Of a stretch of DNA of 64,000 nt, positions 6,525 through 58,650 are shown one piece after another. The number at the start of each line of letters is the position of its first letter. Position 1 is the first letter of the stretch. The stretch lies in IMG/VR virus record IMGVR_UViG_3300014720_000001, positions 1 to 64,000 of that record; one strand, given 5' to 3'. Below the pieces are notes generated by a model, which was given only the letters and a program-made list of their open reading frames with translations, ran no database searches and was not told the DNA's origin. The position numbers and the translations under genes are program-made.

Positions 6525-6559
6525 GCTGCGTCCTCCGTGACACAACATGGATTATAGAA

Positions 6560-6632
6560 AGCCGGCGGTCGGATTCGAACCGACGACAGGCAGTTTACAA
6601 AACTGCTACTCTACCAACTGAGTTACGCCGGC
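6560..6632 (-). tRNA. trnT: tRNA-Thr (anticodon UGU), CCA not encoded
   Basis: Reverse complement GCCGGCG..CTCAGTTGGTAGAG..GCAGT-TTTGTAA-ACTGC..GTCGGTTCGAATCCGAC-CGCCGGC: 7-bp acceptor stem, D-arm, anticodon arm and TTCGAAT T-loop. Confidence 0.97.
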
Positions 6633-6637
6633 AAACA

Positions 6638-7105
6638 TTAAACAGGCTCAGTGATTAAACTAGTTGGCCAGTGGTATGGCAAGTCTATGGGTTCTTGCCA
6701 ACCAAACCGCGAATAATGACGAAAGTCTTTGCGCAGTAAGTTGCTGCGGTGACTGGAGTGAAATTGCTCGTCGCCAACCCACGGTGGATACACGTTGCGC
6801 TCGATGGTGTCGCGCAGCGCTGTATAACTGCCCATGAACTGCGGGCAGAGCGTGTCGTTAAATCCGCGCCGTATCCACTCGCGGCACACGACTATGGCGT
6901 ATACGGCTAGCGCTGTTTCATATCCTGCCCACATACGGACGGCAGGATGGTTGCGCCAGCTACTTGTTCCGGGCTCGTGCTCGCCAACCGGAACGCCAAG
7001 GCAGAGTAAGATCTGCTTACATTCAACCCTTTGTTTTCCTAACCTTTTGTTATCAAGGCAGGCAGCCGAGTGTTTAAATCTCGGCAGGGGCAAAAATGTC
7101 TGCAT
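6638..7105 (-). CDS. pyrimidine-dimer DNA glycosylase family protein (MSMEG_6728-like)
   Basis: MQTFLP...LDNKRLGKQRVE...HPAVRMW...PPWVGDEQFHSSHRSNLLRKD...LPYHWP are hallmark motifs of this family. Confidence 0.88.
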   Translation of the reverse strand: MQTFLPLPRFKHSAACLDNKRLGKQRVECKQILLCLGVPVGEHEPGTSSWRNHPAVRMWAGYETALAVYAIVVCREWIRRGFNDTLCPQFMGSYTALRDTIERNVYPPWVGDEQFHSSHRSNLLRKDFRHYSRFGWQEPIDLPYHWPTSLITEPV

Positions 7106-7109
7106 TTAA

Positions 7110-7433
7110 TCAATCATCAACTTCGTCGTCAAAGTCTTCTTCATATTCTGGGTCGTCATCTTCCTCTAAGTCTTCGTCCCAGTTTTCTTCGTCGTCTTCC
7201 CAATCCTGCTCTTCTTCTATTTCTTCTTCGGCGTCGTCTTCTTCCTCGTCATCGTCGTCGCTGAAAACATAGTTTGGTTTCGGAAAGTCGATATCGCTAT
7301 CGTCGTCATCGTCATTGTCGTCGGTGACAAATTGCCACTCTTCCTCGATAAAGTCGTCGTCGAGGCCGTCTCCGCGACCGTTCGTTAGCTCATGCGACGA
7401 TTGGCGAATCAACGGCGATGTAAAACAGCGCAT
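7110..7433 (-). CDS. highly acidic small protein
   Basis: 53 of the last 83 residues are D/E (hand count); starts 2 nt after the upstream stop. Confidence 0.7.
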   Translation of the reverse strand: MRCFTSPLIRQSSHELTNGRGDGLDDDFIEEEWQFVTDDNDDDDDSDIDFPKPNYVFSDDDDEEEDDAEEEIEEEQDWEDDEENWDEDLEEDDDPEYEEDFDDEVDD

Positions 7434-7435
7434 AG

Positions 7436-10069: not shown

Positions 10070-11249
10070 GACAAATATCCCGCTCGATCAGGCGCATGAC
10101 GTTAGTGGCCGTGAGACACACCGGCTCACCACCCTGTACCCGCAGCCTGATTTTGTTAAGAATGCCGCGCAAGACAGACTTAACGGAGCCGCGGATCTAC
10201 CACGCCATTTATACGCCGACCAGCGCCATAAACTTTATCCGTGTCATACCGCCCCTGCAACATGGATGTCCGCGCTTTTCTTTGCGGACAAGCAGGCGCA
10301 GTTCTCGCCCGACGACGCGGCGGTTATTAAGACTAGGATACACCAAGCGGCCGAGTATTTCGGTATTCGCGGTGCCGTGGCCGAGATGGAAGAGAAGGTT
10401 GCGGTCAGCGCCACGCAAGATATCAATACCCTGCCGGACTCTGAGTTTGCCGTCGTGTGGGTGGGCGAGGACGGCTCGAAAGAGCGCCACTGGCCGCTGC
10501 GCAACGCCGAAGAAGTCAAGTTTGCGGCGGCGCATTTCAAGGCTCACCGCGACGACTTCGTATTCGACGACCGACATGTAATCGCCACAAAGATCCTCGA
10601 AAAGGCTGCCCAGTACGGCGCAGATGTTTCGGGGGCTGAGGGCTCGCTGGAGCTGGCTGCCGGGCTTGGTGCCTGCGCCGCCAAGGTAGCGAGCGACATG
10701 ATCAAAGACCGCGTACGGCTTACCCGCCGGCAGCACGCGCAGCTGGCGGGCGAGTTGTCCAAGTTAGCCGAGGTTATCGACCAGAACCCGGAAAGGGCTC
10801 GTACGGTCGAGACACGGTTAAAGTTGGCGAGCGCGGTCGATAACTTCGATCGGAGCACGCAGCTCCATCGCCTGTACGACGCCGGCGGATTACCGCGGCC
10901 GGAAGAAGTCCTGTTTGCAATCACTGAAAAGGTGGCGCGGGACTTCATGTCGAGCAGTGTCGAAACCACTACGGGTAACGTATACGCGCTAGATGATCTG
11001 GAGAAGCTAGCGGTAGACGACGTGCGCGAATGGCTGGGTGACGACTTTGCGGACGCGGTAAGCGCCGGCGGCGTCTACATGGACCGCGAGAAGCTGGCCG
11101 CGATTGTGCCCACGCTCGATCGCGGCATAGCGTCTATGCTAGACCGGCTTATGCAGGAAAAGTCTGCTGCGCCGGTCGTGAAGTCAGCGTCGGCTTCTGA
11201 TAGCCTTCTTTCGCTTGCTCGCCTTCACGAGCTTGCGGCGGGCGGTTGA
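10068..11249 (+). CDS. K-x-A-rich protein with two DUF6582-like repeats; probable virion head protein
   Basis: SD GTAGGA before MTNIPL at 10068; DLPRHLYADQRHKLYP and TLPDSEFAV...RHWPLRNAEEVKFAAAHF resemble the recalled DUF6582 pattern. Confidence 0.7.
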   Translation: MTNIPLDQAHDVSGRETHRLTTLYPQPDFVKNAAQDRLNGAADLPRHLYADQRHKLYPCHTAPATWMSALFFADKQAQFSPDDAAVIKTRIHQAAEYFGIRGAVAEMEEKVAVSATQDINTLPDSEFAVVWVGEDGSKERHWPLRNAEEVKFAAAHFKAHRDDFVFDDRHVIATKILEKAAQYGADVSGAEGSLELAAGLGACAAKVASDMIKDRVRLTRRQHAQLAGELSKLAEVIDQNPERARTVETRLKLASAVDNFDRSTQLHRLYDAGGLPRPEEVLFAITEKVARDFMSSSVETTTGNVYALDDLEKLAVDDVREWLGDDFADAVSAGGVYMDREKLAAIVPTLDRGIASMLDRLMQEKSAAPVVKSASASDSLLSLARLHELAAGG

Positions 11250-11726
11250 CGCTTTCTTTTTTGGCTTACGCTTTTTAACCGGCGGATTGAACAGCGTTCG
11301 TATGCGCTTAAGTACGGCCGTATCGCTCGTCCGTTTGTATTGAACGTTGTCCCACGCCTGATCAAGATCTTTGGCGGGAATACCGCGTCGAGCCGACTCA
11401 AGATCGTGCGCCAAGCTGTAGGCCGGGTTGTGCCATTTGTAAGCGACGCCTTTGCCGCCTATCGCGTTGTTTAGCGCTTGGTTATCGGCAACCGACATCT
11501 CGTACACTTCTTGCGTGCGGCGGTCGATGATCATTTGCGCGCTGGCAACGATACCGAAAACGCGCAATTTTTTATCGACAACGCCTTCGTGAATTGCGTC
11601 GACGATGGCGGCGTTAGGGCCGTAGCAGTCCCAGCAAAAATCGACGACTTCTTGAATGCTGTAGTTGCACGCCCGGAAAAACTCAGCGATCCGCGCTACG
11701 CCGGCGTGGTCTATTTTGATGCTCAT
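11184..11726 (-). CDS. hypothetical protein with basic C-terminal tail
   Basis: SD AAAGGAG; C-terminus KKRKPKKKASTARRK. Confidence 0.75.
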   Translation of the reverse strand: MSIKIDHAGVARIAEFFRACNYSIQEVVDFCWDCYGPNAAIVDAIHEGVVDKKLRVFGIVASAQMIIDRRTQEVYEMSVADNQALNNAIGGKGVAYKWHNPAYSLAHDLESARRGIPAKDLDQAWDNVQYKRTSDTAVLKRIRTLFNPPVKKRKPKKKASTARRKLVKASKRKKAIRSRR

Positions 11727-11971
11727 TGGAAAACTAACTCCTTTAGCTTTGTAAGTAACCTGCGCATACTCCAGCGCGGAGTTGCGGTAACCGGCTGCGT
11801 ATGCGCAGTACCGGGTTCAACATTCTGCGACGAGAGCCCGCCCGTTTGTTCGTCTAATTCGCCGCGGCAGTATTCGAGATAGAGCTGCCAGTTGTCGTAA
11901 GAGTCTCGGTCTTCGGCTCGCTCGTATGGGATGTAGGGTGGGTTGTCTGGGACTCTGTCGTTCCAGCCCAT
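11723..11971 (-). CDS. hypothetical protein
   Basis: 4-nt overlap with the downstream gene; AAGGA SD; overlaps the csrA C-terminal tail. Confidence 0.55.
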   Translation of the reverse strand: MGWNDRVPDNPPYIPYERAEDRDSYDNWQLYLEYCRGELDEQTGGLSSQNVEPGTAHTQPVTATPRWSMRRLLTKLKELVFQ

Positions 11972-12144
11972 TGCTTTTTGTCCTTCTTTTTAGTGCCGTC
12001 GATTAACTCGCCGCGAACGATCGCTGTCGCTTTTGGCGCAGTTAATCCAATCTTGACTCGATCGCCTGTGATTCCCAAAACTTTCACAACGATTCCGTCG
12101 CCAATTACAACTTCCTGTTCTTTCTTCCTTGAGAGTACAAGCAT
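11854..12144 (-). CDS. csrA: carbon storage regulator CsrA/RsmA (RNA-binding translational regulator)
   Basis: MLVLSRKKEQEVVIGDGIVVKVLGITGDRVKIGLTAPKATAIVRGEL aligns along its length with E. coli CsrA, including the RNA-binding Arg equivalent to R44; extra low-complexity C-terminal tail. Confidence 0.93.
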   Translation of the reverse strand: MLVLSRKKEQEVVIGDGIVVKVLGITGDRVKIGLTAPKATAIVRGELIDGTKKKDKKQWAGTTESQTTHPTSHTSEPKTETLTTTGSSISNTAAAN

Positions 12145-12154
12145 CTTGTCACCA

Positions 12155-12826
12155 TCATGATGTAGCTGAACCTTGTAGCATTTTTACGACATACTCCGTG
12201 TTGCCGTTTTTAAGGTCTAGCGCGGCCATTTGTTTGATAAGTAAACCCGTTTTCAATCGAATCGACTGGTTGATGTCTTCTGTCTTTCCCGCTTCCAAGT
12301 CGTAGACCGCGTTAAACATCGTCGGGTCATCTGAAAAGTCTGTAATGTTGGGGCTGACCCGTGCTGCCCGCAACGCGATACGCAGAATGTCAGGGGCGTT
12401 GATAATCCCCTCGCTGTCCAGTACGGCGCCGATATAGCCCCGCACTTCGTCAGTGAACGGTTCTTTGTCGTCGTCTTCTGGGGGGCTGATTAGCAACGCC
12501 TCTGTGATTCCCCACGCCACCTCTTCGGCGTCCGCGGGGTCCCACATATCCGGACGGTATGTGTCACCACCCAGCACGTTACAGAACGTCACGAAGTCCG
12601 GCAAGCTCTTGAAAAATTTGTCGGTCGTGAGGATCTGGATTGCGACCAGCAGCTTGTCGAGCGCCAGTTGGGGCAGCTCGACGTCGAACTCCTCTTCGAT
12701 TTCGAGGGTGATCGTCGCCGGGTCCCAGTCCAGCGCCTCAATGCCGAACTTATCCAGAAACAGGGTCAGTAGGACGCTCGCGAACGTCTCCCTGCTTTTC
12801 CACGCTTCCTGCGCTATTGTCGACAT
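12155..12826 (-). CDS. hypothetical protein (223 aa)
   Basis: Long ORF with natural composition, in operon arrangement. Confidence 0.8.
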   Translation of the reverse strand: MSTIAQEAWKSRETFASVLLTLFLDKFGIEALDWDPATITLEIEEEFDVELPQLALDKLLVAIQILTTDKFFKSLPDFVTFCNVLGGDTYRPDMWDPADAEEVAWGITEALLISPPEDDDKEPFTDEVRGYIGAVLDSEGIINAPDILRIALRAARVSPNITDFSDDPTMFNAVYDLEAGKTEDINQSIRLKTGLLIKQMAALDLKNGNTEYVVKMLQGSATS

Positions 12827-13244: not shown

Positions 13245-13281
13245 ATCCAACGTGAAGTGTACTTTTTCTTCGGAGGTATCT

Positions 13282-14559: not shown

Positions 14560-14934
14560 TCAATCTCCGGCGGTGCAAGCAAGGTACGCATGATACTGCG
14601 CTATAGCCTCAATACGAGGATTAATCTCTCTAGTTACTGGCTCATCGTCCATAGTGGCCAGTTCGCCACGCAGCATAGCCGCGGTGTACTCGTTGTACAG
14701 CCGAGCCATGTGACCACGTAACCGTCGCGTGGTGCGTTTGAGCACGCATTCCTTCAGAAATGCAGCTCGTTCCCAGAAGTTCGCAATCTTTCCCAATTCA
14801 TCAGCGAACTTCTCTGCCGTCTTCTCGAACAGAAGATGCGCCTTGTCAGATACGATCTGAAAAGCCGGTGCCGTCTTCTGGCATCGAGTAGTGACAGCGA
14901 GGCGGATAGACTCCGCTGGGGCCGAAAGAGACAT
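14560..14934 (-). CDS. hypothetical protein, possibly a head protein
   Basis: SD inside an ACGGAG hairpin; KTA, KTA and KIA motifs. Confidence 0.7.
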   Translation of the reverse strand: MSLSAPAESIRLAVTTRCQKTAPAFQIVSDKAHLLFEKTAEKFADELGKIANFWERAAFLKECVLKRTTRRLRGHMARLYNEYTAAMLRGELATMDDEPVTREINPRIEAIAQYHAYLACTAGD

Positions 14935-14955
14935 GCGTTAACTCCGTTGTAACGC
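14935..14955 (-). promoter_or_regulatory. RBS hairpin with ACGGAG hexaloop (CsrA-type site)
   Basis: GCGTTA-C-A[ACGGAG]T-TAACGC directly before the ATG. Confidence 0.6.
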
Positions 14956-15218: not shown

Positions 15219-15539
15219 CTAGAAAGTCAGTTGGACGACTTGACCCCCAGAGTTCACATAAACGACCCGAACCTTCTTGGCGTCCAGCAAAGATTTGAGT
15301 TGCGTCTTTTTTTCGCTGCTCATGCCGGCAAGACATGATTTGATCTGCGCCATGGCGTTGCGGCGTTTGTCTTGGCGCTTTTGAGCACAGGCGCTGCACC
15401 CACCACTCGCCCCGCTTTTAAACAGATCGCGCTTGTTATAGAAGCACGGAATCGACTCCGAATAGGTCGGGTCGTTTAACATAGAGAGTATGGTGCTATC
15501 TTCTAACACAATCATGTCGCGCATACTAGCTAGCCTCAC
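15219..15539 (-). CDS. small CxxC protein
   Basis: GGCSACAQKR motif; start overlaps the upstream stop. Confidence 0.7.
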   Translation of the reverse strand: MRLASMRDMIVLEDSTILSMLNDPTYSESIPCFYNKRDLFKSGASGGCSACAQKRQDKRRNAMAQIKSCLAGMSSEKKTQLKSLLDAKKVRVVYVNSGGQVVQLTF

Positions 15540-16345
15540 GCAGTTGGCGTAACAGAGTTAGCGGCTGTAACGTACGCCCCGACGCCGGCTACGTTTATCG
15601 CAGCAACACGGAAGCGATAGGCCGTGCCGTTGGTCAGCCCGGTTACAGTGAATGTCGGCACCGCAGAGACAGGTCGCGCGACCGTTACCCAGTTAGGTGT
15701 GCCGGCGGCTAGTGTGCGTTGAATTCGGTAGTCGGTAATAACCGCGCCGCCATTATTTGTTGGCGCCACCCATGTCAGTACCGCCTGTGCATTTCCGGCG
15801 GCAACCTGTAGTGTTGTCGGCGCGGCTGGGACGTTCGGTGGCGTACCAATCCACGTTTCGCCGCCGGGAAGTAATAGGTCCGCAATGTCGAGCGTGGACT
15901 TTAATCGCTGCACGTCCTCGATAACGTCTTCGATAAACGCTTTAACTTCGGCGCGTGAACGCAGCAGAACGTCAACATAGTTTAGTCGAAACCACGCCGG
16001 GCGATCATTTGGGATCGGCTCGTCTTCGGGATACTCTTCCAGATCGGTCGGGGAGCATACGTGATCAAACGCGCCGACCCGTTCTTCTGCGCCGGGTTTC
16101 AGCGGTAACAACTGGTAGGCAAATATTTTGTCTGGCATCTGTGTCGGATTGCTCGCCGTAATCCGCACCCGAATGCCGTCTGTAGTTTCGTAGTTGTACC
16201 GGCTGACCTGCCACGTAAGTTTGACGTGCCGGCTGCTTCCTGTGGCTGGCGGCGGATCTAAATCGGGCAAATAAAAATTCAGCCCGAGCGTGTCCGGCAG
16301 CGTGATGATTTCTTCGTTGGGGCCCTGCGAGCAACAGTCCGTCAT
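15536..16345 (-). CDS. virion-associated protein with C-terminal fibronectin type III domain
   Basis: PAAPTTLQVAAGNAQAVLTWVAP...ITDYRIQ...VTGLTNGTAYRFRVAAINVAGVG is a canonical FN3 pattern. Confidence 0.85.
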   Translation of the reverse strand: MTDCCSQGPNEEIITLPDTLGLNFYLPDLDPPPATGSSRHVKLTWQVSRYNYETTDGIRVRITASNPTQMPDKIFAYQLLPLKPGAEERVGAFDHVCSPTDLEEYPEDEPIPNDRPAWFRLNYVDVLLRSRAEVKAFIEDVIEDVQRLKSTLDIADLLLPGGETWIGTPPNVPAAPTTLQVAAGNAQAVLTWVAPTNNGGAVITDYRIQRTLAAGTPNWVTVARPVSAVPTFTVTGLTNGTAYRFRVAAINVAGVGAYVTAANSVTPTA

Positions 16346-16352
16346 GATATCT

Positions 16353-16625
16353 TTACTCCGTTAATACGCGGGCTGTAATGTTTACTGGCCCCGGCGTGGT
16401 TGAGCGGACATACGCGAGCGCCAGTCCCTCGTTGTCAGTGGGTCCGGGTTGTGTGATTTGCGCGCTCGGGTTGTCGGCAAGAATTTCTACTTGGCGGCCG
16501 GCAACAGGTCGGTCGCAGTCGTCGCGAAGGCGGATTTTGACGACAGCAGCTTGTGCCCCATTGGCTAAGACCTGCGGCTTCGAACCATAAAGCAGCTTCG
16601 AGTGCGTGGGGCTTACGTAGCTCAT
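16353..16625 (-). CDS. stand-alone bacterial Ig-like (Big_1/invasin-type) domain protein
   Basis: VLANGAQAAVVKIRLRD..DRPVAGRQVEI...TDNEGLA...STTPGPVNITARV. Confidence 0.75.
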   Translation of the reverse strand: MSYVSPTHSKLLYGSKPQVLANGAQAAVVKIRLRDDCDRPVAGRQVEILADNPSAQITQPGPTDNEGLALAYVRSTTPGPVNITARVLTE

Positions 16626-17042: not shown

Positions 17043-22800
<5,758 letters not shown>

Positions 22801-48617: not shown

Positions 48618-48679
48618 TTTATTTCACCAAGTTGGCGTGTTACGGGCGCAAGCGCCCCGGGCTGCTAGCCCAATACAAT

Positions 48680-48712
48680 AAACGGCGGCTGCGAAAACCG
48701 CAACCGCCGTTT
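48680..48712 (-). terminator. intrinsic terminator after the tail tube gene
   Basis: AAACGGCGG...CCGCCGTTT inverted repeat followed by TTTATTGT on the - strand. Confidence 0.7.
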
Positions 48713-48744
48713 AATTGTTTGTGTTTGCTCGATCAACGCGCTGG

Positions 48745-49219: not shown

Positions 49220-52200
49220 TTAGACCACTAAGTGCAGCTCAATGTTGTTGAGCGGCGCCGGGACAGTCAGATCAAGCACAATCTCGATGCGATCCTTGAG
49301 CAGCGGATGAATCTGCAGCTTGCGGATTTCGCCATCAATGAGTTGCGAGCCCAGTTCCTCGGTATTACCGTTGCCCTTAAGGAAATCGATAATCGCCGTG
49401 ACTTCGTACTCTAACCGGCTGACCATACCCGGCTGCGCGTTGGTGCGGCCGATGTAGGGCTTCAGGCGACGGTAGAACAGGTACGACATGCTGTCGACGT
49501 TACGACGAATCATTTCTTCGCGACGGTTCAGATCGAGATTGTCGGTCGTCAAGGCGTGACGCGTATGCGGCGTGCCGTCCTTGTCTTCCGTCACAATCCA
49601 GACGCCGGCCTCGGCCATGCGGTTAAGCTGGGTTTCGTTGAGGTACTTGTAGGAACGCGAGAAATCATCGAAACCGGCAACCTCGACGTTCGTCAGCGGC
49701 TGGTGGGGCACCACGCCGGAGACGAGACCGGCCAGAGCGGCCGCAAGGTAGTAACCGGGCTGGATAGTGCCGGCTTCGCCGACCTGATCCGGCCACACGG
49801 CGCACACGCGACGGTTCGAGAGCGAACCACCCTGCTGCGCGACGTCTTCAACAATTTCGTTGCGGTTACGGTTATGCCAGACTTCGACGCGCTGCGGAAC
49901 TGTGACAGCGGCGTCAGCGCCGGAGTACAGCAGCAGGGTCGATTCCGAAATAACCTGATCCACAACGTACTCTTCGTACTGCTCTTCACCGAAGCCGTCC
50001 ACCGAGTAGTTGTAGCGCACGATATCGCCGGGGCGCACTTCATTTGTGATGAAGTACCCATTGCCCGACGTTACCGTCAGCTTCGTGTACTGCGTGTTGG
50101 TTGCGTTCGGGTCGTCGGCCAGCGTGGCAAGAACCGGGTCATTGACCGTCTCACCAAGCACACCGGCGATGTTTACGCCTTCACCAACAACCTGCGCGAC
50201 CGGTTGCGCCTTGAGGGCGAAGAAGCCGGCCTTCCAGTTGTTCGCGTACTCATTCGACTCGGCGCCGATGTGCGCGGCCCACAGGTTTTGAATCCTGCGG
50301 TCGAACGTCATCGGAACGAGGTTATACATGTCATCGCGGCCCTTGATGCGCTCAAGCACCTGTACCCACTTGTCCATGTCAGGCCCGAGCGAACGACCTT
50401 CTTCGTCGTACTTCTCGGGGTCAGCTACCGCTGTGTACTTCACCACGGTACCGTTGCTGTTGGAGAGCGCCTTGTAGACGCCCCACTTCAGCGGGTTATC
50501 GGGATCGAGCTGACCCTTGATGTTGTCGAGATCGGCAACGTCGCTGATCGAGTTGACCTGATCGGCCAGCTCAGACAGCCACTCGCGATACTCGACGTAC
50601 ACCTTGCCGGAGAGAACCGGCAGCGGTTGCTCAGCGCCGGCGCTCGTCCACTCGGGGTGGTAAGCGACGATGCCTTCCTGCACGCAGATTTGGGTGTCTT
50701 CAAACCAGAAGTTGGTCATCGGCGCAAATCCGATCCGATTCTTCGAAATCTGGATGTCGTCCTTGATGAACAACTTGAGGTCCATATCTTCGCCGCTGAT
50801 CAGCTGGCAGGTAGCCGTCGCCAACACCTTGCCAGCACCGGTACCCGGCGAGGCAATAGTTACCGTCGGCGCAACTGTGTAACCTGCGCCGCGGTTAGTC
50901 ACGGTGATCGCCACTACCTTGCCGGCGTTGTCGCCGGTGCCGAGCACGGCAACGCCCGTGGCAGTTTGATTCTGCACGAGGTTACCGGTCGGGGCCGAAA
51001 ACGTAACAGTCGGCACAGTGGTGTAACCCGAACCAGCGTTTGTGATGCTGACAGGACCAACCTTGTCGATCGGCGCGCCGTCTTGGGCAAGCAACACCGT
51101 CGGAAGGTCGTCGCGCAGGATGAGCTTGCGCACCGGACCAGCCTTGCTGGAGTTAACAGTGATGTACCACTTGTCGCCCTTGCGAAGACCAGCGACCGCG
51201 TCAGGGTTGTCGCCAGACGTGCCGATGAACTTAACCTTTACGCCGTTCGTGCCGATCGACACGCCGACCGCGTTCAAGCCAACACCGTCGCCAGTGACTT
51301 CGGTCGGGCCAGAGAAGTCGAGACCCTTGACCGTGCGCACAGTGATCTCGGGGAGTTGATCCCACGTGCCACCCTTGGTGCACTCGATGACGTAGGTGTC
51401 GTTCTTGGCGCCAACGTACTTGCCAAGGATGTCAACCGCGCCGCTGACACCGTTCACAGACTCTTCAGTCTGGTACGGGCCGTCAGCGTCAGAAACAGCC
51501 TTGACCTTTTCGTAGGTCTGCTTGACGTCAAACTTCCACTTCTGGCCGACGGCAAACGTGTCATTGCCGGAGGTTGTGAAACGCACCGAAAGACCGCGCG
51601 TACCGATGAAGGTCACGCCGTCGTTGTCGTCAAAATCGTTCGGCTGAATCTCGGCCTGATCGTCAGTGCCGCTGGCCGAAACAACACGCAGACGGGCAGC
51701 GTTGCAACCCGAAATGGTGCTCTTGATGACTTCAACAACGTACTCTTCTTCAACAGCGCCAGAAACGAGACCGTCATAGTCGTTCGCGCCCTCGTCTTCA
51801 GCGGTCAGAACAGTTACGGCGACGGCGTTATCGACGCCCTCGATTTGCGTAACAGTTACGTCGACGCCGTTTTCAGCGTCAGCTGCGTAGCTGTCCTGAT
51901 TGTTAACGTCCGAAACTGCCGGCAGGATACGCGACGGAACAAGGTCGCTGGCGAAACCGGTTACATACGTCTCAAGCACAGTCTCGATGCAGTCGTTGTC
52001 GGCACTCACAGTGCGGAGCTGAACAACGTCACCGAGCTGCACGTCGCGATCGGCGAACGCGCTTGACCGCGGGTACGCGGCACCGTTCGACTTGAACGAC
52101 AGCGTGCTGGACTGAATCCAGTTCGTCTTGCCGGGCACAGCTGTAATAGTTGTGTCGCCTTCGCCCATGTTGTGCGCGTAGTAACGCAGCATGGCATCGT

Positions 52201-52447
52201 CGACGTACAGCTTGACGTACGGCAGATCGACAACCGAGCCGGCTTTACGCTGCGGCCACGGATAGCACGTGTCGTTGAGACGGTCGTACTGACCGAGAAG
52301 ACAGAACTTCTTCTCGTCGGTATTGCTATAGCGATGAAGAACAGCGTGCGGGCCAGCGATGTGGGCGCGCAGCGGCTCCGTGATCTCCGTGGGGACGATA
52401 CGGAACTCTTGGAAAACGAGAACTTGTGGTTTTACGTAGCTCGACAT
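49220..52447 (-). CDS. tail sheath protein (1075 aa)
   Basis: C-terminal sheath domain (RRVCAVWP...YLAAALAGLVSG...PLTN...RHALTT...IRRNVDSMSY...IEIVLDLTVPAPLNNIEL). Confidence 0.9.
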   Translation of the reverse strand: MSSYVKPQVLVFQEFRIVPTEITEPLRAHIAGPHAVLHRYSNTDEKKFCLLGQYDRLNDTCYPWPQRKAGSVVDLPYVKLYVDDAMLRYYAHNMGEGDTTITAVPGKTNWIQSSTLSFKSNGAAYPRSSAFADRDVQLGDVVQLRTVSADNDCIETVLETYVTGFASDLVPSRILPAVSDVNNQDSYAADAENGVDVTVTQIEGVDNAVAVTVLTAEDEGANDYDGLVSGAVEEEYVVEVIKSTISGCNAARLRVVSASGTDDQAEIQPNDFDDNDGVTFIGTRGLSVRFTTSGNDTFAVGQKWKFDVKQTYEKVKAVSDADGPYQTEESVNGVSGAVDILGKYVGAKNDTYVIECTKGGTWDQLPEITVRTVKGLDFSGPTEVTGDGVGLNAVGVSIGTNGVKVKFIGTSGDNPDAVAGLRKGDKWYITVNSSKAGPVRKLILRDDLPTVLLAQDGAPIDKVGPVSITNAGSGYTTVPTVTFSAPTGNLVQNQTATGVAVLGTGDNAGKVVAITVTNRGAGYTVAPTVTIASPGTGAGKVLATATCQLISGEDMDLKLFIKDDIQISKNRIGFAPMTNFWFEDTQICVQEGIVAYHPEWTSAGAEQPLPVLSGKVYVEYREWLSELADQVNSISDVADLDNIKGQLDPDNPLKWGVYKALSNSNGTVVKYTAVADPEKYDEEGRSLGPDMDKWVQVLERIKGRDDMYNLVPMTFDRRIQNLWAAHIGAESNEYANNWKAGFFALKAQPVAQVVGEGVNIAGVLGETVNDPVLATLADDPNATNTQYTKLTVTSGNGYFITNEVRPGDIVRYNYSVDGFGEEQYEEYVVDQVISESTLLLYSGADAAVTVPQRVEVWHNRNRNEIVEDVAQQGGSLSNRRVCAVWPDQVGEAGTIQPGYYLAAALAGLVSGVVPHQPLTNVEVAGFDDFSRSYKYLNETQLNRMAEAGVWIVTEDKDGTPHTRHALTTDNLDLNRREEMIRRNVDSMSYLFYRRLKPYIGRTNAQPGMVSRLEYEVTAIIDFLKGNGNTEELGSQLIDGEIRKLQIHPLLKDRIEIVLDLTVPAPLNNIELHLVV

Positions 52448-52454
52448 ACGTCTC

Positions 52455-52466
52455 GGCCTCCGTGCC
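52455..52466 (-). promoter_or_regulatory. sheath RBS hairpin GGC[ACGGAG]GCC (CsrA-type site)
   Basis: 3-bp stem with ACGGAG loop containing the SD. Confidence 0.55.
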
Positions 52467-52503
52467 TAAAATTTACGTGTGTGCGGTAGGGCGGTCAGGT
52501 CGT

Positions 52504-52510
52504 AGTATAC
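52504..52510 (-). promoter_or_regulatory. GTATACT motif upstream of the sheath gene
   Basis: Intergenic, within CGTAGT-TGTGTAT-ACTACG; recurs at 934 and 55777. Confidence 0.35.
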
Positions 52511-52554
52511 ACAACTACGGGTTTCCAAAAAAAACACCCCACCGTGAAAATTTC

Positions 52555-53265: not shown

Positions 53266-53380
53266 GTACGTTGTCCTTTAGTTTTTGGTCGTAAATCTTG
53301 GTCGGAGCAAACAAACTGATCTTTTTGGGTGTCAGCTGAATTTTATCGAGCTTCGGTTCGGCAGGATTTTTTTTGCTCAT
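53228..53380 (-). CDS. small hypothetical protein (50 aa, not in the ORF track)
   Basis: Manual translation MSKKNPAEPKLDKIQLTPKKISLFAPTKIYDQKLKDNVHEYLRRSEPAGD; TAATG stop/start overlap with the upstream gene. Confidence 0.45.
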   Translation of the reverse strand: MSKKNPAEPKLDKIQLTPKKISLFAPTKIYDQKLKDNVHEYLRRSEPAGD

Positions 53381-54699
53381 TAGATATCCCAAAAATCGTC
53401 TGGAGTGTTTTGCGCAACAGGTTCGCCGTCACATATTTGCTGCTCGTCACCAGTCGTCAGTGTTTCCCCGGTTTCCGCGGCGAGCGTTAAATTATCGCCA
53501 GACTCGTCTTCGGCCGCGGCGATGGGCACGCTTGGTATCCACGTGCACGCCTGCGGCTCGCCAACGTTAACAACGGTAACGTAATCAACATCCGGGCCGT
53601 ACTCGCCAAGCTTCTCGTACACGATAGCATAGTCGCCCGGGTTTAGCGCCAGCGATTGCGCCCATCGACCGTTTGCCGTTGTAGATGTCGTGGCGAGCGC
53701 AAGGTTTTTTGGTGTTGCAAAGCCGCTGACGTCAAATACGGTTTTAGCGTAAATGTAGATCTTAGCGCCATGAATCGGGCAACCGTTAGCGTCTTTGTAT
53801 ACGAACCTGTCGTTACCGTTGTAGTTCTGGTCAACCGGTACGGCGCCACAACCCTCGATCGGCAAAGTGGGCCCAACGCGCTCCGCAGGTTCGCCGCCGA
53901 TTTCGATGGCGTATGCGGTGTTGCTGAACGGGAGCAGACCCATTTTGACTTGATATACAATCGGCACGTTACGGATTGCGGCCGCTACTTGGATTGTTTC
54001 GACAAGCCAGCGTTCGTCGCTAGAGCCGTTAATCCAGATGTCGCTTTTATTAATCGCCGGGAATCCAATGACGCGCGCAGTGATATAGGGGTTGTGCCGA
54101 GTCATACCCTTAAACTGCGCGTCAACGTCTTCTTGAATAGTCTGGGTGGAAATGTCCCAGCACTGCAAAGACAGCGGCGGGTGGTAGCCAATTTCAAAGC
54201 CGGTGCCGTTGCAGACCGGGCAGTCCGAGTCCAGCACTTCTTGCGTCAGCTGATCTCGGCATCTGCGGCACGGCTTTCCGAAACGAAACGGCTTTAATAG
54301 GTAGCCCGGCACGGCAACATATTTAAACCGCAGCTGTTCTTTGCGGATAATCTCGCGCGCGATCAGCCAGTCTTTTTCAGGAAGGTCGCCGTAGCAGTTG
54401 GCGGCCTGTGAAACATAAACACTGGTCGGCGTAGTTAATACGACGCGATAGTGGTCCAGCAGGTCGTAGCCAGCTTCGCGCCATTCAGGGTCATAGGCGT
54501 TGTAACCGTTTACAACAGGGGCGCCGATGTTCACCCAATCGAGGCCGTCGCGCAGCCCGGTTTTGCCAAGTTGCAGCTGGAAGACGTACGGGCCGGGTTC
54601 GTTAAACGTGCGCTCTAGTTGCCACCAAACGCGTGTTGTACCGCGGACCATATGATCCACAGACACGCGGCGAAACGGGAAAATGCGAGATTGGGGCAT
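53380..54699 (-). CDS. neck/head-closure protein with Zn motif
   Basis: CRRC...CPVCNGTG; WLVETIQVAA...VYQVKMGLL head-closure-like segment; C-terminal prealbumin-like segment. Confidence 0.6.
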   Translation of the reverse strand: MPQSRIFPFRRVSVDHMVRGTTRVWWQLERTFNEPGPYVFQLQLGKTGLRDGLDWVNIGAPVVNGYNAYDPEWREAGYDLLDHYRVVLTTPTSVYVSQAANCYGDLPEKDWLIAREIIRKEQLRFKYVAVPGYLLKPFRFGKPCRRCRDQLTQEVLDSDCPVCNGTGFEIGYHPPLSLQCWDISTQTIQEDVDAQFKGMTRHNPYITARVIGFPAINKSDIWINGSSDERWLVETIQVAAAIRNVPIVYQVKMGLLPFSNTAYAIEIGGEPAERVGPTLPIEGCGAVPVDQNYNGNDRFVYKDANGCPIHGAKIYIYAKTVFDVSGFATPKNLALATTSTTANGRWAQSLALNPGDYAIVYEKLGEYGPDVDYVTVVNVGEPQACTWIPSVPIAAAEDESGDNLTLAAETGETLTTGDEQQICDGEPVAQNTPDDFWDI

Positions 54700-54719
54700 A
54701 TGCTTTTTTGAGCCTTTGC

Positions 54720-54752
54720 GCGGTTCGACATAAAAATATCATGTCAAACCGC
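54720..54752. promoter_or_regulatory. 12-bp imperfect inverted repeat (operator or hairpin)
   Basis: GCGGTTCGACAT-N9-ATGTCAAACCGC (11 of 12 match) in the intergenic gap; contains TTGACA on the - strand. Confidence 0.4.
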
Positions 54753-54760
54753 TCAAGATA

Positions 54761-55753
54761 TCAATAACGAATCCGAAGCGCGTCGGTATACCCGGCATAC
54801 TTGTACGTCGACGAAACCTCACCATAGCCACCTTCGAGGTTAATACTGGCCTTGGTTGCTCGGACCCACTCGCGATAGGCTTGCCACCGCGCTTGGCCGG
54901 CACGTTCATAGCTGGCTTCTTTGTTCTGGTCGTTTACAGACAGCCCAGCCGCGTTGTAGTCGAACTGATTACGGCGGAACTGCTCGGCCACCATCATGAA
55001 CAGGTTGGCGCAAATACCCTCCAGCCAGTGATATCTAAACGGGAAAGACTGGGTGTTGTATACGGCGTCGATGGGCGGGGGTACTTCGTTCCAGTACATA
55101 ACCGGGCGCGCAATCGCCAACGCAATCTCGGCGTCATCGAACATCAGGCTATCGAGCAGAAAGCTTTCGCCCGGAGCCGAATCGCGCAGGTGTAAGCGGA
55201 TCTCGGCGATGCTCGGAGGCCCGCCCGGCTGATTAACACTGGAAAACGTGCTGCGGCTGATTACGACCGAAAACGTGTTCGAGAAGATCACGCAGGGCTG
55301 GTTGCTGGCTTGAGCAGGCAAGCTAACCAGCGCTATCTCACCGTAGTACACACCGGGAACGCCAGTCAGGCTGTTCGACAACGCGACGATTACTTTGCCG
55401 GTCTCGGGCTCGACGATAGTGGCCGGAACCTCAATCGGCGCATTCTGATTGCCTAGCGACAGCTGTTCTTTTAGCCGCAGCCTGACCTGAAAGTCTTGCG
55501 CGTCGGTGCAGGCTGTCAGGTTTACAGGGCGGCCTTCGCGGTCGTGCATTGTCCACTCAATCGTGGCGCACTGGCCTTGCGTGAGCGTAATAGCGCGCAT
55601 GCGGGTCAGCAGCGGCTGCCCGTTCACGCCCGAAATAGGTGCGCTAATAACGTTCTGGCCGACGCACGAAACCGGTGTAATAGCTTGGCCGCCGGTATTG
55701 CCGTTGCAACACGGCACAATTGGGTGTTCAGCGGGCGTGGCAATAACAACCAT
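54761..55753 (-). CDS. head-tail adaptor/neck protein with N-terminal BppU-like Ig domain
   Basis: ITLTQGQCATIEWTMHD...GKVIVAL...GVYYGEI; C-terminal IAEIRLHLRD...FDDAEIALAI...YWNEVPP adaptor pattern. Confidence 0.65.
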   Translation of the reverse strand: MVVIATPAEHPIVPCCNGNTGGQAITPVSCVGQNVISAPISGVNGQPLLTRMRAITLTQGQCATIEWTMHDREGRPVNLTACTDAQDFQVRLRLKEQLSLGNQNAPIEVPATIVEPETGKVIVALSNSLTGVPGVYYGEIALVSLPAQASNQPCVIFSNTFSVVISRSTFSSVNQPGGPPSIAEIRLHLRDSAPGESFLLDSLMFDDAEIALAIARPVMYWNEVPPPIDAVYNTQSFPFRYHWLEGICANLFMMVAEQFRRNQFDYNAAGLSVNDQNKEASYERAGQARWQAYREWVRATKASINLEGGYGEVSSTYKYAGYTDALRIRY

Positions 55754-55756
55754 GTG

Positions 55757-55768
55757 AACCTCCGTGTT
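55757..55768 (-). promoter_or_regulatory. RBS hairpin AAC[ACGGAG]GTT (CsrA-type site)
   Basis: 3-bp stem with ACGGAG loop. Confidence 0.55.
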
Positions 55769-55776
55769 ACACCGTA

Positions 55777-55783
55777 AGTATAC
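55777..55783 (-). promoter_or_regulatory. GTATACT motif upstream of the neck operon
   Basis: Directly after a terminator U-tract, about 25 nt upstream of the ATG. Confidence 0.35.
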
Positions 55784-55789
55784 AAATAA

Positions 55790-55821
55790 AAACGGCTGGC
55801 CGCTTACGCAGCCAGCCGTTT
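55790..55821 (-). terminator. intrinsic terminator ending the capsid operon
   Basis: AAACGGCTGGC-N10-GCCAGCCGTTT followed by TTATTTG on the - strand. Confidence 0.75.
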
Positions 55822-55845
55822 AGAAGAGATTGACGAGGTTGACGC

Positions 55846-56166
55846 TCAGTCCCAACCTTCCGGGGTCTTTGTGCCCAGAGTGTCTGCGTTGAGGTTGACC
55901 TGATCGATGCTGCCATCGTCTTCGTCGGTGAGGTAAACGGCCGGCGACTTGGTGATAACTAGCTTGCCGTCTTCAAGCGCGCGTTCGAGCGCTTTGAACT
56001 GCCGCTGACCACCGCGTCCGCCCTTGCCTACCGTCGCGACAAGATCGCCGGGGACGGTGTACGTTTCGTTGTCAGCGAGACGCTTGCCGTGCGCACCGAG
56101 GAAGCCGAACACCCGGGCGGCGCCCGAGACGTTCTTAACTGTCGTGTATAAACCGGGTACTGCCAT
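55846..56166 (-). CDS. small virion protein (head cluster)
   Basis: ATGGAG SD; last gene before the terminator. Confidence 0.75.
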   Translation of the reverse strand: MAVPGLYTTVKNVSGAARVFGFLGAHGKRLADNETYTVPGDLVATVGKGGRGGQRQFKALERALEDGKLVITKSPAVYLTDEDDGSIDQVNLNADTLGTKTPEGWD

Positions 56167-56185
56167 TGTTAGTTACTCCATTTCT

Positions 56186-56575
56186 TCAGGATGCGCTTTG
56201 CAGAGCCGCGGCAGCAGCAGCCTGCAGCGTCAGAACCGCCTGCGCAATCGCAGGTTGCTCCGCCGCTACGCTCGCCACATCGCCGTAAGCAGCCGCCTTT
56301 TCACCAGTGCCGCCGAGGCCCGCGGCGGCAAGCATCTCGTCCAACTGCTTGTTAGCAGTCGAGAGCGAGGATGCTTGCGCGGCCGCGACCTTTTCTTGCT
56401 CCGCCGTGTAGAGCACATGAAGCTTGGAAGCAGCAGCCCACATTTCTGCGGCTTCGCCTTCCGAGCGCGGCTGGATGCCGTGCGCGGCAAGCTTCTCGAA
56501 GAAATACGGCGCGGCAAGTTCCGACACGATTGTGGCGTAAGCTTGCTCAGCCGCTTCTTTAACATTATCAGACAT
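56186..56575 (-). CDS. Ala-rich head cluster protein
   Basis: AAAGGAG SD; KEA, KLA, KVA and KAA motifs. Confidence 0.78.
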   Translation of the reverse strand: MSDNVKEAAEQAYATIVSELAAPYFFEKLAAHGIQPRSEGEAAEMWAAASKLHVLYTAEQEKVAAAQASSLSTANKQLDEMLAAAGLGGTGEKAAAYGDVASVAAEQPAIAQAVLTLQAAAAAALQSAS

Positions 56576-56609
56576 AACGTGCTCCTTTGGGTTTAATTCC
56601 TACACGGCA

Positions 56610-57536
56610 TCACTTGAAGTTAACGCGAGCCAGACCGTTGGTATGGCCGAACGAGCCACCCGAAGTCTGGTAGGCGAAGTACTCAAGCATGTAAGCCTCA
56701 CGACGGATGTACATCGTGGTGGGCTCCAGCTCGTAGTTCTTGCCGATGAACTTCGGCGACGCAAACATGAACAGCGAGTCATCGGGGACAAGATCGCGCT
56801 TGATCGTGACGATCCAGCGGCAGTTGAGGAAGTTCGTCTCCGCCCAACCGTTCTTGATGATGTCCTGCGAGAAATCACCACCCATCTCGTCGCGACCGAA
56901 CTTGAGGAGTTCCTTGATCGTGATGTTATTCACGAGGCAGGTTTCAACCTCGAAGTGCGACGGCGTCCGGGGCATGACCTTCAGCGCGTCAACAAGGGTC
57001 TCACGGGTGATGCCGCCCGAGATCTCCTCGTACTGCACAACGCCGCTGGCGACGTTGGCAACACCCGGAGTCGGGAGCACGGCGTTGAAGGCGGCAATGA
57101 ACTTGCCGTCCTCTTCCGCCAGCATGTCCTTGATCATGTTGTCGCTGAGGACCTGACGGATGTCGATCACGTACGTACGCAGCTCGTCGACGTCCTTCAC
57201 AGCGCGGGGCGACACGATCCGGTCAAACATGACGCGGTAGCGCGGGCCACGGATGTAGAAGTTAATCGGGAGCGTCGCAAACGGGAGCGACACAGCCGCC
57301 GGGGAATCGGGCTCCTTGTCCACCACCTTGACGGGCTTGTCAGTATCAACCTGACGGTCAAGCTCGTCGTTGGTGATGGTCAGCGGCGGCATAATCCGCC
57401 GGTAGAACCCGTCTTCACGCATCTTGGTGCGCGTGAAGTCGTTAACCGCATCAATGGCCTGCTTCTGCATGCCGGGGGTATCAAGCTGCTCAAAAAGCGT
57501 TTCGTTGAGCAGTTGGATCTCTTGCTGAGTGGGCAT
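56610..57536 (-). CDS. major capsid protein (HK97 fold)
   Basis: RTKMREDGFYRRIMPP...IKDMLAEEDGKFI pattern; biased, highly expressed codon usage; start MPTQQ at 57536 behind GGAGG; order protease-scaffold-decoration-MCP. Confidence 0.85.
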   Translation of the reverse strand: MPTQQEIQLLNETLFEQLDTPGMQKQAIDAVNDFTRTKMREDGFYRRIMPPLTITNDELDRQVDTDKPVKVVDKEPDSPAAVSLPFATLPINFYIRGPRYRVMFDRIVSPRAVKDVDELRTYVIDIRQVLSDNMIKDMLAEEDGKFIAAFNAVLPTPGVANVASGVVQYEEISGGITRETLVDALKVMPRTPSHFEVETCLVNNITIKELLKFGRDEMGGDFSQDIIKNGWAETNFLNCRWIVTIKRDLVPDDSLFMFASPKFIGKNYELEPTTMYIRREAYMLEYFAYQTSGGSFGHTNGLARVNFK

Positions 57537-57540
57537 TGTG

Positions 57541-57556
57541 GGAACCTCCATGTTCC
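57541..57556 (-). promoter_or_regulatory. MCP RBS hairpin GGAAC[ATGGAG]GTTCC (CsrA-type site)
   Basis: Perfect 5-bp stem with AUGGAG hexaloop containing the SD; a second GGA lies in the 5' arm. Confidence 0.65.
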
Positions 57557-57575
57557 TTATTTAGTTAGGGATAGG

Positions 57576-58154
57576 TCAGTCGATTGTCGCCGCGGTGCCC
57601 GCCGGCAGGTACACGCACCAGAAGGAGAGTGTATCCACACCATTGTGGTTCTTGGCCGCGCCGCTAGAAACAACACCGCAAACCGGGTTTACGTACTGCA
57701 CGGCGTTGGCCTTCGTCAGCACGCCCTCAACAGCAGCGCCGCCGCTGGTGGGAGCAGTCAGAAGGTCACCCGGAGCATACGTGACAGCGCTGCCGCCGGA
57801 CGTCTTCACGTACTCGGTGGTAGCGATTTCATAACCACCGGTCGCAACAAGACCCGACAGCTTGCCCGAGGGCGAAACCGCTTGGTGCATGAAGTTACCG
57901 GCCGCTGTGGTACCCGGATTGCTGACGTCAGCATCGGTCGAACCGTTCAGCAGGAAGATCGCGACGCCCGTGGCGCTGACGCCCGGAACGAACACGTCCT
58001 TGCCGCCCTCTTTCGAGAGGTGCACAACGCGACCGCGCGGAACATCATACGTGACTGTGCTCAGCAGCTTGGCCGAGTAGTCGAGGGACGCCATATCGAA
58101 CCAGCCCTTTTTGACGTCAAGGCCGTGTTCAAACATAAGATCAGGAGCAGGCAT
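57576..58154 (-). CDS. capsid decoration/cement protein
   Basis: 192 aa, beta-rich (GLVATGGYEIAT...YAPGDLLTA...GVLT), directly before MCP as lambda D is. Confidence 0.6.
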   Translation of the reverse strand: MPAPDLMFEHGLDVKKGWFDMASLDYSAKLLSTVTYDVPRGRVVHLSKEGGKDVFVPGVSATGVAIFLLNGSTDADVSNPGTTAAGNFMHQAVSPSGKLSGLVATGGYEIATTEYVKTSGGSAVTYAPGDLLTAPTSGGAAVEGVLTKANAVQYVNPVCGVVSSGAAKNHNGVDTLSFWCVYLPAGTAATID

Positions 58155-58158
58155 TGGT

Positions 58159-58172
58159 AGACCTCCGTGTCT
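58159..58172 (-). promoter_or_regulatory. RBS hairpin AGAC[ACGGAG]GTCT (CsrA-type site)
   Basis: Perfect 4-bp stem with ACGGAG loop. Confidence 0.62.
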
Positions 58173-58208
58173 GTATCAATTGGAAACGTGTTCCGGTAAG
58201 GGACGAAC

Positions 58209-58634
58209 TCAGGTAGTGGGCGGGTTAAGACCAAGGCCCGTAAACAGCTTTACGTCGGAAGCCTTGAGGCGACCATCGCGGGCACCCACATACCCGCTCG
58301 TCAGACTGGCTGTCGGGTCGTAGCTGGCGGTCTTTGTGGCCACCGGCGTACCAAGACGAGCCATTTCAGCTGCGTTTTTATGCGCAGCTAATTTGATAAC
58401 AAGTTCCATCGTGCGCACCGGGTCTTGAAGGGCGGCAGCAAGCGCCTCCTTCTGGTGCGACTCGATCCGCTCGTTCTCCACGCACGCCTTGACGGCTTCG
58501 GGGATCAGGTGGGCCAGCTTTTCGCTGGTTTCAACCTGCGCCTTTTCGGCGGCGGCGGCTTTGGTCATCGCGGCATCGGAGTAACCGATGTAGTCGATGA
58601 TCTTCTGTACGAGCGCGTTATTCTGAGTAGACAT
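58209..58634 (-). CDS. head cluster protein
   Basis: ACACGGAGGT SD; several K-x-A motifs. Confidence 0.78.
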   Translation of the reverse strand: MSTQNNALVQKIIDYIGYSDAAMTKAAAAEKAQVETSEKLAHLIPEAVKACVENERIESHQKEALAAALQDPVRTMELVIKLAAHKNAAEMARLGTPVATKTASYDPTASLTSGYVGARDGRLKASDVKLFTGLGLNPPTT

Positions 58635-58650
58635 TAAAACCTCCGTGTGA

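Follow-up and report, generated by a model that had tools for sequence, protein, structure and literature searches.

A conserved hairpin resembling the CsrA/RsmE binding site on virion-gene ribosome-binding sites in a family of large uncultured phages

Introduction

Translational regulators of the CsrA/RsmE family recognize a compact RNA element whose high-affinity consensus is an ANGGAX hexaloop seated immediately above a stem whose closing pair is C-G (Duss et al. 2014, PMC4005645). In RsmE structures the protein backbone reads both adenines together with the GGA, leaving N and X looped out; the hcnA ribosome-binding site (RBS) has the loop ACGGAU, and the SELEX consensus also selected A as the penultimate 5' base (PMC4005645). 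Here we analyze hairpins of this shape at the RBSs of virion genes in a 64,000-nucleotide stretch of viral DNA, positions 1-64000 of the 204,621-bp IMG/VR contig IMGVR_UViG_3300014720_000001 (hereafter the window), which also carries a csrA gene. A first-pass annotation, made from the letters alone, had proposed that these hairpins form a regulon of the phage's own CsrA.

The phage elements are like the stem-loops of RsmE-hcnA and RsmZ (2jpp, 2mf0-2mfh) in their ANGGAX hexaloop, their C-G-closed stem and their overlap with the Shine-Dalgarno (SD) sequence. As in the SELEX consensus, the penultimate 5' base is usually A, and the phage loops, ACGGAG or ATGGAG, are read in the context C-A-(C/T)-G-G-A-G-G; X is always G because the loop doubles as the GGAGG SD. 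They are unlike RsmE-hcnA in that the targets are the phage's own late virion genes, with one conserved site per leader and no sponge RNA found in the window by Rfam.

Characterized CsrA targets usually contain at least two GGA sites, at distances that one dimer can bridge, and the phage leaders, which have no conserved second GGA, differ in this from a typical CsrA-repressed mRNA. In the CsrA-FliW-flagellin (Hag) system of B. subtilis and Campylobacter, CsrA represses an abundant self-assembling protein through a GGA hairpin at the SD, and the hag leader has two CsrA sites. Capsid and sheath are also abundant self-assembling structural proteins, which makes the analogy attractive, but we found no FliW-like protein among the neighbors scanned and could identify no assembly-feedback component. 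A second parallel is the coat protein of MS2 and PP7, which binds a small hairpin at an RBS and start codon and represses the replicase. If the control proposed here exists, both cases would have a phage protein that tunes translation by way of a small RBS hairpin of another phage gene; the fold and the loop code are nevertheless unrelated, the genomes of MS2 and PP7 are RNA, and the control runs in the other direction.

Our locus is like other phage- and plasmid-borne cases in that csrA is carried by a phage, and the PHROGs database already has 'CsrA-like regulator' families. A survey found csrA in 30 of 2517 phage genomes (Sobrero & Valverde 2020, PMC7366521). Knock-down of the csrA homologue PTXU04_00028 led to smaller plaques in one phage; that study called the part played by csrA in the phage cycle untested and proposed host manipulation (Adler et al. 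2025, PMC11879866). In the papers searched we found no CsrA-type sites described for structural genes of the phage itself. Phage-borne csrA is thus already known, and what is new here is the matching RNA element on virion-gene RBSs, for which CsrA is an attractive but unproven regulator.

Hairpins at the ribosome-binding sites of virion genes

The phage is a member of a large uncultured family with genomes of ~200 kb. Homologs of its major capsid protein (MCP), 56-100% identical, occur in 66 IMG/VR loci, the longest contigs reaching ~235 kb, and its closest cultured relatives by MCP, Salmonella phage Arash and Vibrio phage D69, are only 27-28% identical. Relatives were read as 20-kb pieces, and individual loci and contigs are given below by our L numbers.

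The hexamer A(C/T)GGAG occurs 22 times on the coding (minus) strand of the window, and nine of these occurrences sit 6-10 nt upstream of a start codon. There the loop and the closing G together spell a GGAGG SD 6-10 nt before the start codon, and the site thus overlaps the SD. Eight of the nine are as follows, and the last, at a GNAT gene, is described further below.

57541..57556, minus strand: MCP RBS hairpin, GGAAC/GTTCC (5 bp) around ATGGAG, loop at 57551..57546
58159..58172, minus strand: RBS hairpin of a head-module gene, AGAC/GTCT (4 bp) around ACGGAG, equal to the centroid fold
55757..55768, minus strand: RBS hairpin of the gene called 'neck' in the first-pass annotation, AAC/GTT (3 bp) around ACGGAG, -5.9 kcal/mol with its extension
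52455..52466, minus strand: sheath RBS hairpin, GGC/GCC (3 bp) around ACGGAG
16353..16364, minus strand: RBS hairpin of tail gene 15536..16345, TTA/TAA around ACGGAG, three A-U pairs, not the minimum free energy (MFE) fold
58639..58648, minus strand: RBS of gene 58209..58634, AC/GT (2 bp) around ACGGAG
56176..56181, minus strand: RBS of gene 55846..56166, ATGGAG with 1-bp closure, a weak site, mostly 1-2 bp in relatives
14935..14955, minus strand: RBS hairpin of gene 14560..14934, GCGTTA(C)A/TTAACGC around ACGGAG, -6.2 kcal/mol

The main genes concerned, together with a further gene that bears the element in some relatives, are these.

56610..57536, minus strand: MCP gene, 28% identity (E=2e-23) to the annotated MCP of Salmonella phage Arash
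57576..58154, minus strand: 192-aa head-module gene directly 5' of MCP
58651..59994, minus strand: 447-aa gene
54761..55753, minus strand: gene downstream of the 'neck' hairpin RBS
49220..52447, minus strand: tail sheath gene, 1075 aa, matching PHROG phrog_2839 (E=6e-10) and phrog_279 in its C-terminal part
15536..16345, minus strand: tail-protein gene with PHROG minor tail and tail fibre matches

The name 'neck', like 'decoration' for the 192-aa head-module gene, came from the first-pass annotation and found no backing in Pfam or PHROG; we keep the former as a label. That annotation had also described nine RBSs with the SD in a base-paired hexaloop and a stem that differed each time. All nine A(C/T)GGAG sequences are present, but only six are closed by at least 3 bp, the others having direct closures of 1-2 bp. 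Within the window, moreover, three sites have the 10-mer ACACGGAGGT in common, and the diversity of stems is fully borne out only across relatives. The closing pair is C-G at six of the nine sites.

The MCP hairpin is the MFE fold (-5.8 kcal/mol, 91% of the ensemble), with the start codon at ATG 57536, not 57551, and the GGAGG SD spanning the loop and the closing G. The 58634 gene has longer stems in distant relatives (GATC/GATC in L046), some with G-U pairs (GATC/GATT in L039, TGATC/GATTG in L043). The 'neck' hairpin is kept in the closest clade only, and the hairpin at 16353..16364 lies outside the fetched relative loci, so that the evidence on it comes from the window. At the 14934 gene the stem can be counted either as 1 bp of direct closure or as 7 bp with a one-base bulge; it is identical in 10 close relatives, under a loop of ACGGAG or AGGGAG, and therefore holds no covariation information.

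Two further positions had been put forward as related GGA-loop sites. The leader at 6065 does not fold in the way proposed for site 6066, and at 11734 a pentaloop AGGAG hairpin appears only as a minor fold that is partly kept in relatives; we leave both as uncertain.

Covariation of the stems among relatives

Comparison with relatives establishes that the hairpins are a real, conserved RNA element under selection for structure, as the first-pass annotation had supposed from a constant loop on varying stems. With the orthologous starts identified in the 66 MCP loci, we anchored 22-nt segments on the loop and scored a 5-bp helix against 500 shuffles. For MCP, with 38 distinct sequences, 87.9% of cells were paired vs 69.2% when shuffled, the covariation score was 0.447 vs 0.135, and both-side changes were found in 31 cells vs 8.2. 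The head gene 5' of MCP (39 sequences, 83.9% vs 65.9% paired, score 0.462 vs 0.182) and the sheath gene (30 sequences, 76.0% vs 61.3%, score 0.459 vs 0.210) gave the same picture. For none of the three genes did any of the 500 shuffles match the observed score, paired fraction or count of double-sided changes, and compensatory changes affect 4-5 of the 5 pairs in each. Sliding the 3' partner by 1-3 columns, a control that preserves relatedness, brought pairing down to 19-63% in the three genes.

At least 12 different MCP stems occur under one loop, among them GGAAC/GTTCC, AGAAC/GTTCT, AAGAC/GTCTT, GGAC/GTCC and CGATC/GATCG, and the shorter GCAC/GTGC, TAAC/GTTA, AAAC/GTTT and TTC/GAA; sheath stems reach 8 bp in L018 and L019. 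Position 1 of the loop is A in all 38 MCP and all 39 head-gene sequences, and the closing pair is C-G in 37/38 MCP, 34/39 head-gene and 22/30 sheath sequences. MCP, the gene just 5' of it and the sheath gene bear the element consistently, and in distant clades it is also found on the 447-aa gene 58651..59994 and the 58634 gene. In the main clade there is no hairpin at the AAGGAG RBSs of the genes starting at 59994 and 56575, and none was seen at the RBS of the tail-tube gene (AGGTGA). We also considered a DNA-level palindrome serving as a protein operator, which is unlikely because the arms vary freely with pairing kept and G-U pairs are used.

Enrichment against chance

GGA lies in the SD window at 31 of the 60 gene starts in the 64-kb window. 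Six of these 31 RBSs are closed by at least 3 bp vs 1.3-1.8 expected (p~0.003, permutation), and all six have A(C/T)GGAG loops. The 22 GGA RBSs in the window that have AAGGAG and similar sequences in place of A(C/T)GGAG show closures of 0-1 bp. Away from RBSs, the 13 A(C/T)GGAG sites are closed by 0-2 bp, which is at chance level, and closure by at least 3 bp is found at 4 of ~205 NNGGAG hexamers.

Relatives supply the stronger evidence. Among 345 GGAG RBSs from 23 non-redundant relatives, 82 have closures of at least 3 bp vs 20.4 expected, and 63 of at least 4 bp vs 8.0 expected (p<0.0005). Closure is found in 74 of the 178 loops that begin with A and in 8 of the 167 others, the latter being the chance level. 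There are 3-6 hairpin RBSs per 20-kb locus down to ~67% MCP identity, and 0-1 in the three most distant members. Many of these sequences are akin, so counts across loci are not independent; kinship is dealt with only in part by the slide controls and by the variety of stems. Single-sequence folding energies, at -3 to -7 kcal/mol, do not differ from those of dinucleotide shuffles at any site except GNAT; because they are not significant alone, folding energy cannot carry the claim.

The GNAT hairpin and other structured leaders

The ninth A(C/T)GGAG site stands apart from the others.

6519..6552, minus strand: GNAT RBS hairpin, 14-bp stem with G-U pairs, loop ACGGAG, burying ATG 6524
start at ATG 6524, minus strand: GNAT acetyltransferase gene (Pfam PF00583)
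6560..6632: tRNA-Thr (Rfam)

The stem, which the first-pass annotation had given as the 2 bp TC/GA, has 14 bp and a folding energy of -22.3 kcal/mol (z=-7.2, with 0 of 200 shuffles as stable). In relatives the GNAT stems have 5-12 bp with many compensatory changes and are accompanied by the same promoter-like box, and position 1 of the loop is variously A, T or G. The far stronger stem, the hidden start codon and the variable loop position 1 make it probable that this hairpin is a device of another kind. The tRNA-Thr and a TATAAT box at ~6553..6558 immediately precede it. A transcript from that promoter would lose most of the 5' arm, and read-through and promoter-initiated GNAT mRNAs might therefore be translated differently.

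Several other leaders and intergenic regions contain conserved structures or motifs.

~58175..58200, minus strand: intergenic hairpin 5' of the head-gene RBS, GGAA.../...TTCC, with a CGGAUC loop in some relatives
60012..60030, minus strand: hairpin 5' of gene 58651..59994, CUAAUCG...CGGUUAG, -7.6 kcal/mol
55790..55821, minus strand: intrinsic-terminator-like hairpin, 14 bp, after gene 55846..56166
48679..48713, minus strand: intrinsic-terminator-like hairpin, 16 bp, after the tail-tube gene

The stems of the first two differ among relatives with complementarity kept. The two terminator-like hairpins, both strong, bound a head operon and a neck-to-tube operon, and the one at 55790..55821 is followed by a TATACT -10-like box and then by the 'neck' hairpin RBS. 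Many relatives of gene 53380..54699 (L009-L034 and others) have, ~40 nt before the start, a conserved TTAGCTATCAGCG and after it a TATAAT-like box that ends 5-8 nt before the ATG, with no SD; the motif is absent in the window itself. This arrangement suggests that the gene has a leaderless or near-leaderless mRNA in those relatives.

The phage CsrA and its locus

The first-pass annotation had correctly placed a csrA gene at 11854..12144. The features that define its locus are the following.

11854..12144, minus strand: csrA, 96 aa, CsrA domain (Pfam PF02599) in residues 1-50
11723..11971, minus strand: conserved 82-aa gene overlapping the 3' end of csrA, no Pfam or PHROG match
1119..3035, plus strand: large terminase gene (terL)

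Judged by its sequence, the product is a genuine member of the CsrA family. It scores 70.8 bits against Pfam PF02599 (cut-off 27, E=9e-20, residues 1-50) and matches a PHROG 'CsrA-like regulator' family (E=5e-14). RsmE/CsrA chains in the PDB match at E=1.6e-9 to 2.6e-7, the top one being RsmE in its complex with hcnA (2jpp, E=1.6e-9), with a gapless alignment over residues 1-48 that would be consistent with the interdigitated homodimer fold. All five RNA-contact residues checked in beta1 and beta5 are present (L2, L4, R6, R44 and E46 in E. coli/RsmE numbering); T5 is replaced by S, R7 by K and Q29 by R. Across 17 CsrAs of the family, which are highly divergent (27-45% identity to the first alignment sequence), L2, R6, R44 and E46 are invariant and L4 nearly so.

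CsrAs of relatives have 64-73 aa, and many end in ...NGLERP; the 96 aa of the window protein reflect a frame difference after an A-rich stretch, and this run of A could be slippery. The C-terminal ~40 aa are Thr/Ser-rich and, at 11854..11971, overlap the next gene, whose 82-aa homologs begin within or just past csrA in all relatives examined. We considered the long tail as a FliW-type extension and rejected the idea on account of the frame difference and the overlap with a conserved gene.

In most terL loci a hidden Markov model (HMM) scan found csrA at a fixed place, and this holds for deep branches such as L221 and L235 (from the contig of L047). The gene comes next after the g223 homolog (gene 12155..12826 in the window), 3-9 kb from terL and on the other strand, and this fixed place favors an old association. 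Neither FliW nor any other family was detected in the csrA neighbors g223, g82, g180 and g877 or the other open reading frames (ORFs) scanned, most of which have no detectable family. As had been stated for the window, the RBS of csrA itself contains no GGA. An ACGGAG ~50 nt 5' of csrA (12199) was considered as an autoregulatory site and rejected, being located inside the upstream coding region, without closure, and reading ACGAAG in relatives.

Beyond this family, tblastn of a phage collection gave csrA-like matches in 51 records, one of which, labelled Salmonella, is a bacterial scaffold. The gene is common in uncultured phages, as a single N-terminal peptide pattern matched ~200 csrA-like stretches of IMG/VR. 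Some very large viral contigs, of 245-436 kb, hold two or three separate csrA-like genes each (3300017388_000001, our L316/L323, and 3300025770_001492, our L153/L311/L340).

What might read the hairpins

The shape of the hairpin matches the published high-affinity CsrA/RsmE site, and on this ground binding by a CsrA protein is predicted. The A and the pyrimidine at loop positions 1 and 2 are not needed for pairing with the 16S 3' end (the anti-SD), so something other than the ribosome constrains the loop. Moreover, weak stems of -3 to -7 kcal/mol under a loop in exact register fit protein recognition better than a role as a structural block. Control of the virion-gene RBS hairpins by CsrA, whether the phage protein, the host protein or both, is the leading explanation and in our judgment a good possibility that falls somewhat short of probable. 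A CsrA-family dimer would clamp the SD hexaloops, the phage CsrA doing so where it is present and the host's otherwise or additionally, so that CsrA and the 30S subunit would be competitors; the effect would be to damp, delay or balance the synthesis of the structural proteins made in greatest amount. We infer the binding, the repression and a role in timing or stoichiometry. A more specific and rather unlikely version is a self-contained viral Csr circuit in which the phage's own CsrA, reading a single hexaloop hairpin per major structural mRNA, governs the timing or stoichiometry of capsid, head-accessory and sheath proteins, with the host CsrA substituting where csrA has been lost; by analogy with CsrA-FliW-flagellin, such control could be coupled to assembly.

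A number of observations weigh against CsrA as the reader, and most of all against the phage's own CsrA. In what follows a csrA-less genome is one in which csrA is absent from its usual position, judged from the 20-kb pieces, and the survey of csrA status covers loci other than L037, L039, L042, L043, L045, L046, L049, L051-L053, L058-L060 and L063. In L191, L192 and L220 the g223 homolog is followed by the 82-aa gene homolog with no csrA between them (gap region ~21300..21650). L191 and L192 are the contigs of L019 and L018, whose MCPs are 96% identical to that of the window, and although they have no csrA at the locus, L018 and L019 keep the MCP, head-gene and 8-bp sheath hairpins. Similarly, the MCP locus of L048 has four hairpin RBSs despite there being no csrA near terL: in L406, which comes from the contig of L048, no ORF closer than 10 kb to terL resembled CsrA, even with the threshold relaxed to E<=10. 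The usual csrA position is likewise without the gene in L244 and L231; at ~18180..18870 in L244, where csrA is expected, are a 90-aa membrane-like ORF and a 130-aa ORF. In csrA-less genomes csrA could be located elsewhere, or a host CsrA could serve as a substitute. Among unrelated phages, the cultured csrA-positive Vibrio phage 219E41.1 has 1 closed RBS among 30 with GGA, which is chance, and 66 unrelated viral contigs, examined over the 6 kb surrounding csrA, have 15 closed vs 13.6 expected. Arash and D69 have neither a csrA match nor an MCP hairpin. The sites themselves also depart from expectation. The second GGAs that the first-pass annotation had seen in several leaders are not conserved: those in the 5' stem arm of the MCP leader and in the upstream hairpin of the head-gene leader are lost in relatives, so that each leader retains a single conserved GGA site. 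At loop position 2 the phage has a pyrimidine in place of the purine of the SELEX consensus, loop position 1 varies at the GNAT hairpin, and the only Rfam match in the 64-kb window is the tRNA-Thr, with no Csr sponge RNA among the results. Thus the idea of a regulon of the phage's own CsrA draws support from site architecture, contact residues and synteny, but the hairpins are kept in csrA-less lineages and are lacking in 219E41.1, and the link between hairpins and the phage's own csrA is unproven.

These hairpins may instead be a matter of RBS design in cis, displaying the SD or insulating it from neighboring structure in a long polycistronic late mRNA or, as a stem-loop at a 5' end or processing site, stabilizing the mRNA, so that the likeness to a CsrA site comes from placing a GGAGG SD in a small loop. 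We regard this as the main rival, quite possible if on the doubtful side. It would account for the persistence of hairpins without csrA at the usual locus, for the single site per leader and for the variable first position of the GNAT loop; the other covarying intergenic hairpins, 5' of the head-gene RBS and of 58651..59994, imply that structured leaders are a general habit of these phages, and a -10-like box lies a few nucleotides before both the 'neck' and the GNAT hairpin, which would place them at transcript 5' ends. Such a design explains neither the invariant A of the loop nor the near-absence of closure from loops with another first base. Two genes of the same operon with strong AAGGAG RBSs (starts at 59994 and 56575) have no hairpin in the main clade, nor does the tail-tube gene, whose product is presumably about as abundant, and elements meant for recognition are the more typical setting for a hexaloop of constant length and exact register. 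An unlikely variant of the CsrA explanation, differing from it only in which protein binds, has the host CsrA as the main reader, such that virion synthesis is tied to the state of the host or late mRNAs titrate host CsrA, the phage csrA being accessory and directed at other targets such as host mRNAs. Retention of hairpins without phage csrA and the lack of such a site on csrA's own RBS in the window speak for it, as does the published view of phage CsrA as a host manipulator (PMC11879866, PMC7366521). The fixation of csrA in place across deep divergence, with invariant RNA-binding residues, counts against it, though these features fit both readings.

The GGAG in SD regions is also the target of T4 RegB, and a RegB-like endoribonuclease or some translational repressor of another kind might read the loops. 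Most window proteins have no recognizable family, which gives such a factor somewhere to hide; we nevertheless consider it very improbable, given that no RegB-like or other RNA-binding family was found among the ~45 window proteins scanned, that CsrA is the sole recognizable RNA-binding regulator among them, and that messages for virion proteins, late and abundant, would be improbable substrates for degradation. A last possibility, that arms complementary by chance flank a strong SD and that common descent inflates their number, is scarcely credible. The single-sequence z-scores are not significant and one 10-mer recurs at three window sites, as chance would allow, but the permutation tests, the compensatory changes under relatedness-preserving slide controls and the chance-level closure of non-RBS hexamers all stand against it.

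If CsrA-type control were borne out, it would provide the first concrete viral target set for a viral CsrA and the first case of a global bacterial RNA-binding regulator reused for the control of virion production. The hairpins would also be of use as portable RNA elements of ~16-20 nt with natural compensatory variants. Even without CsrA, they would be a previously undescribed and strongly conserved class of RBS hairpin on the most highly expressed genes of widespread uncultured ~200-kb phages.

Other features of the window

The G+C content of the 64-kb window is 55.6%, and nearly all genes are on the minus strand. Besides those named above, profile searches identified the following.

6638..7105, minus strand: pyrimidine-dimer DNA glycosylase, DenV-like (E=1e-19)
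16353..16625, minus strand: small Big_1 Ig-like protein
17043..18008, minus strand: collagen triple-helix repeat protein (E=3e-41)
within the 64-kb window: T5orf172/MUG113 protein (profile match)

Most other window proteins gave no family match in the Pfam and PHROG scans. The CsrA homologs, all of them metagenomic, offer no clue to the host. MCP matches in genome assemblies are confined to three contigs of metagenome-assembled genomes (a Nannocystaceae bin and an unclassified bacterium), which are possibly binning artefacts. Two long antisense ORFs, at 49556..52066 (plus strand, 836 aa) opposite the sheath gene and at 56643..58160 (plus strand, 505 aa) opposite the head genes, are most likely shadow ORFs of the G+C-rich coding strand rather than genes.

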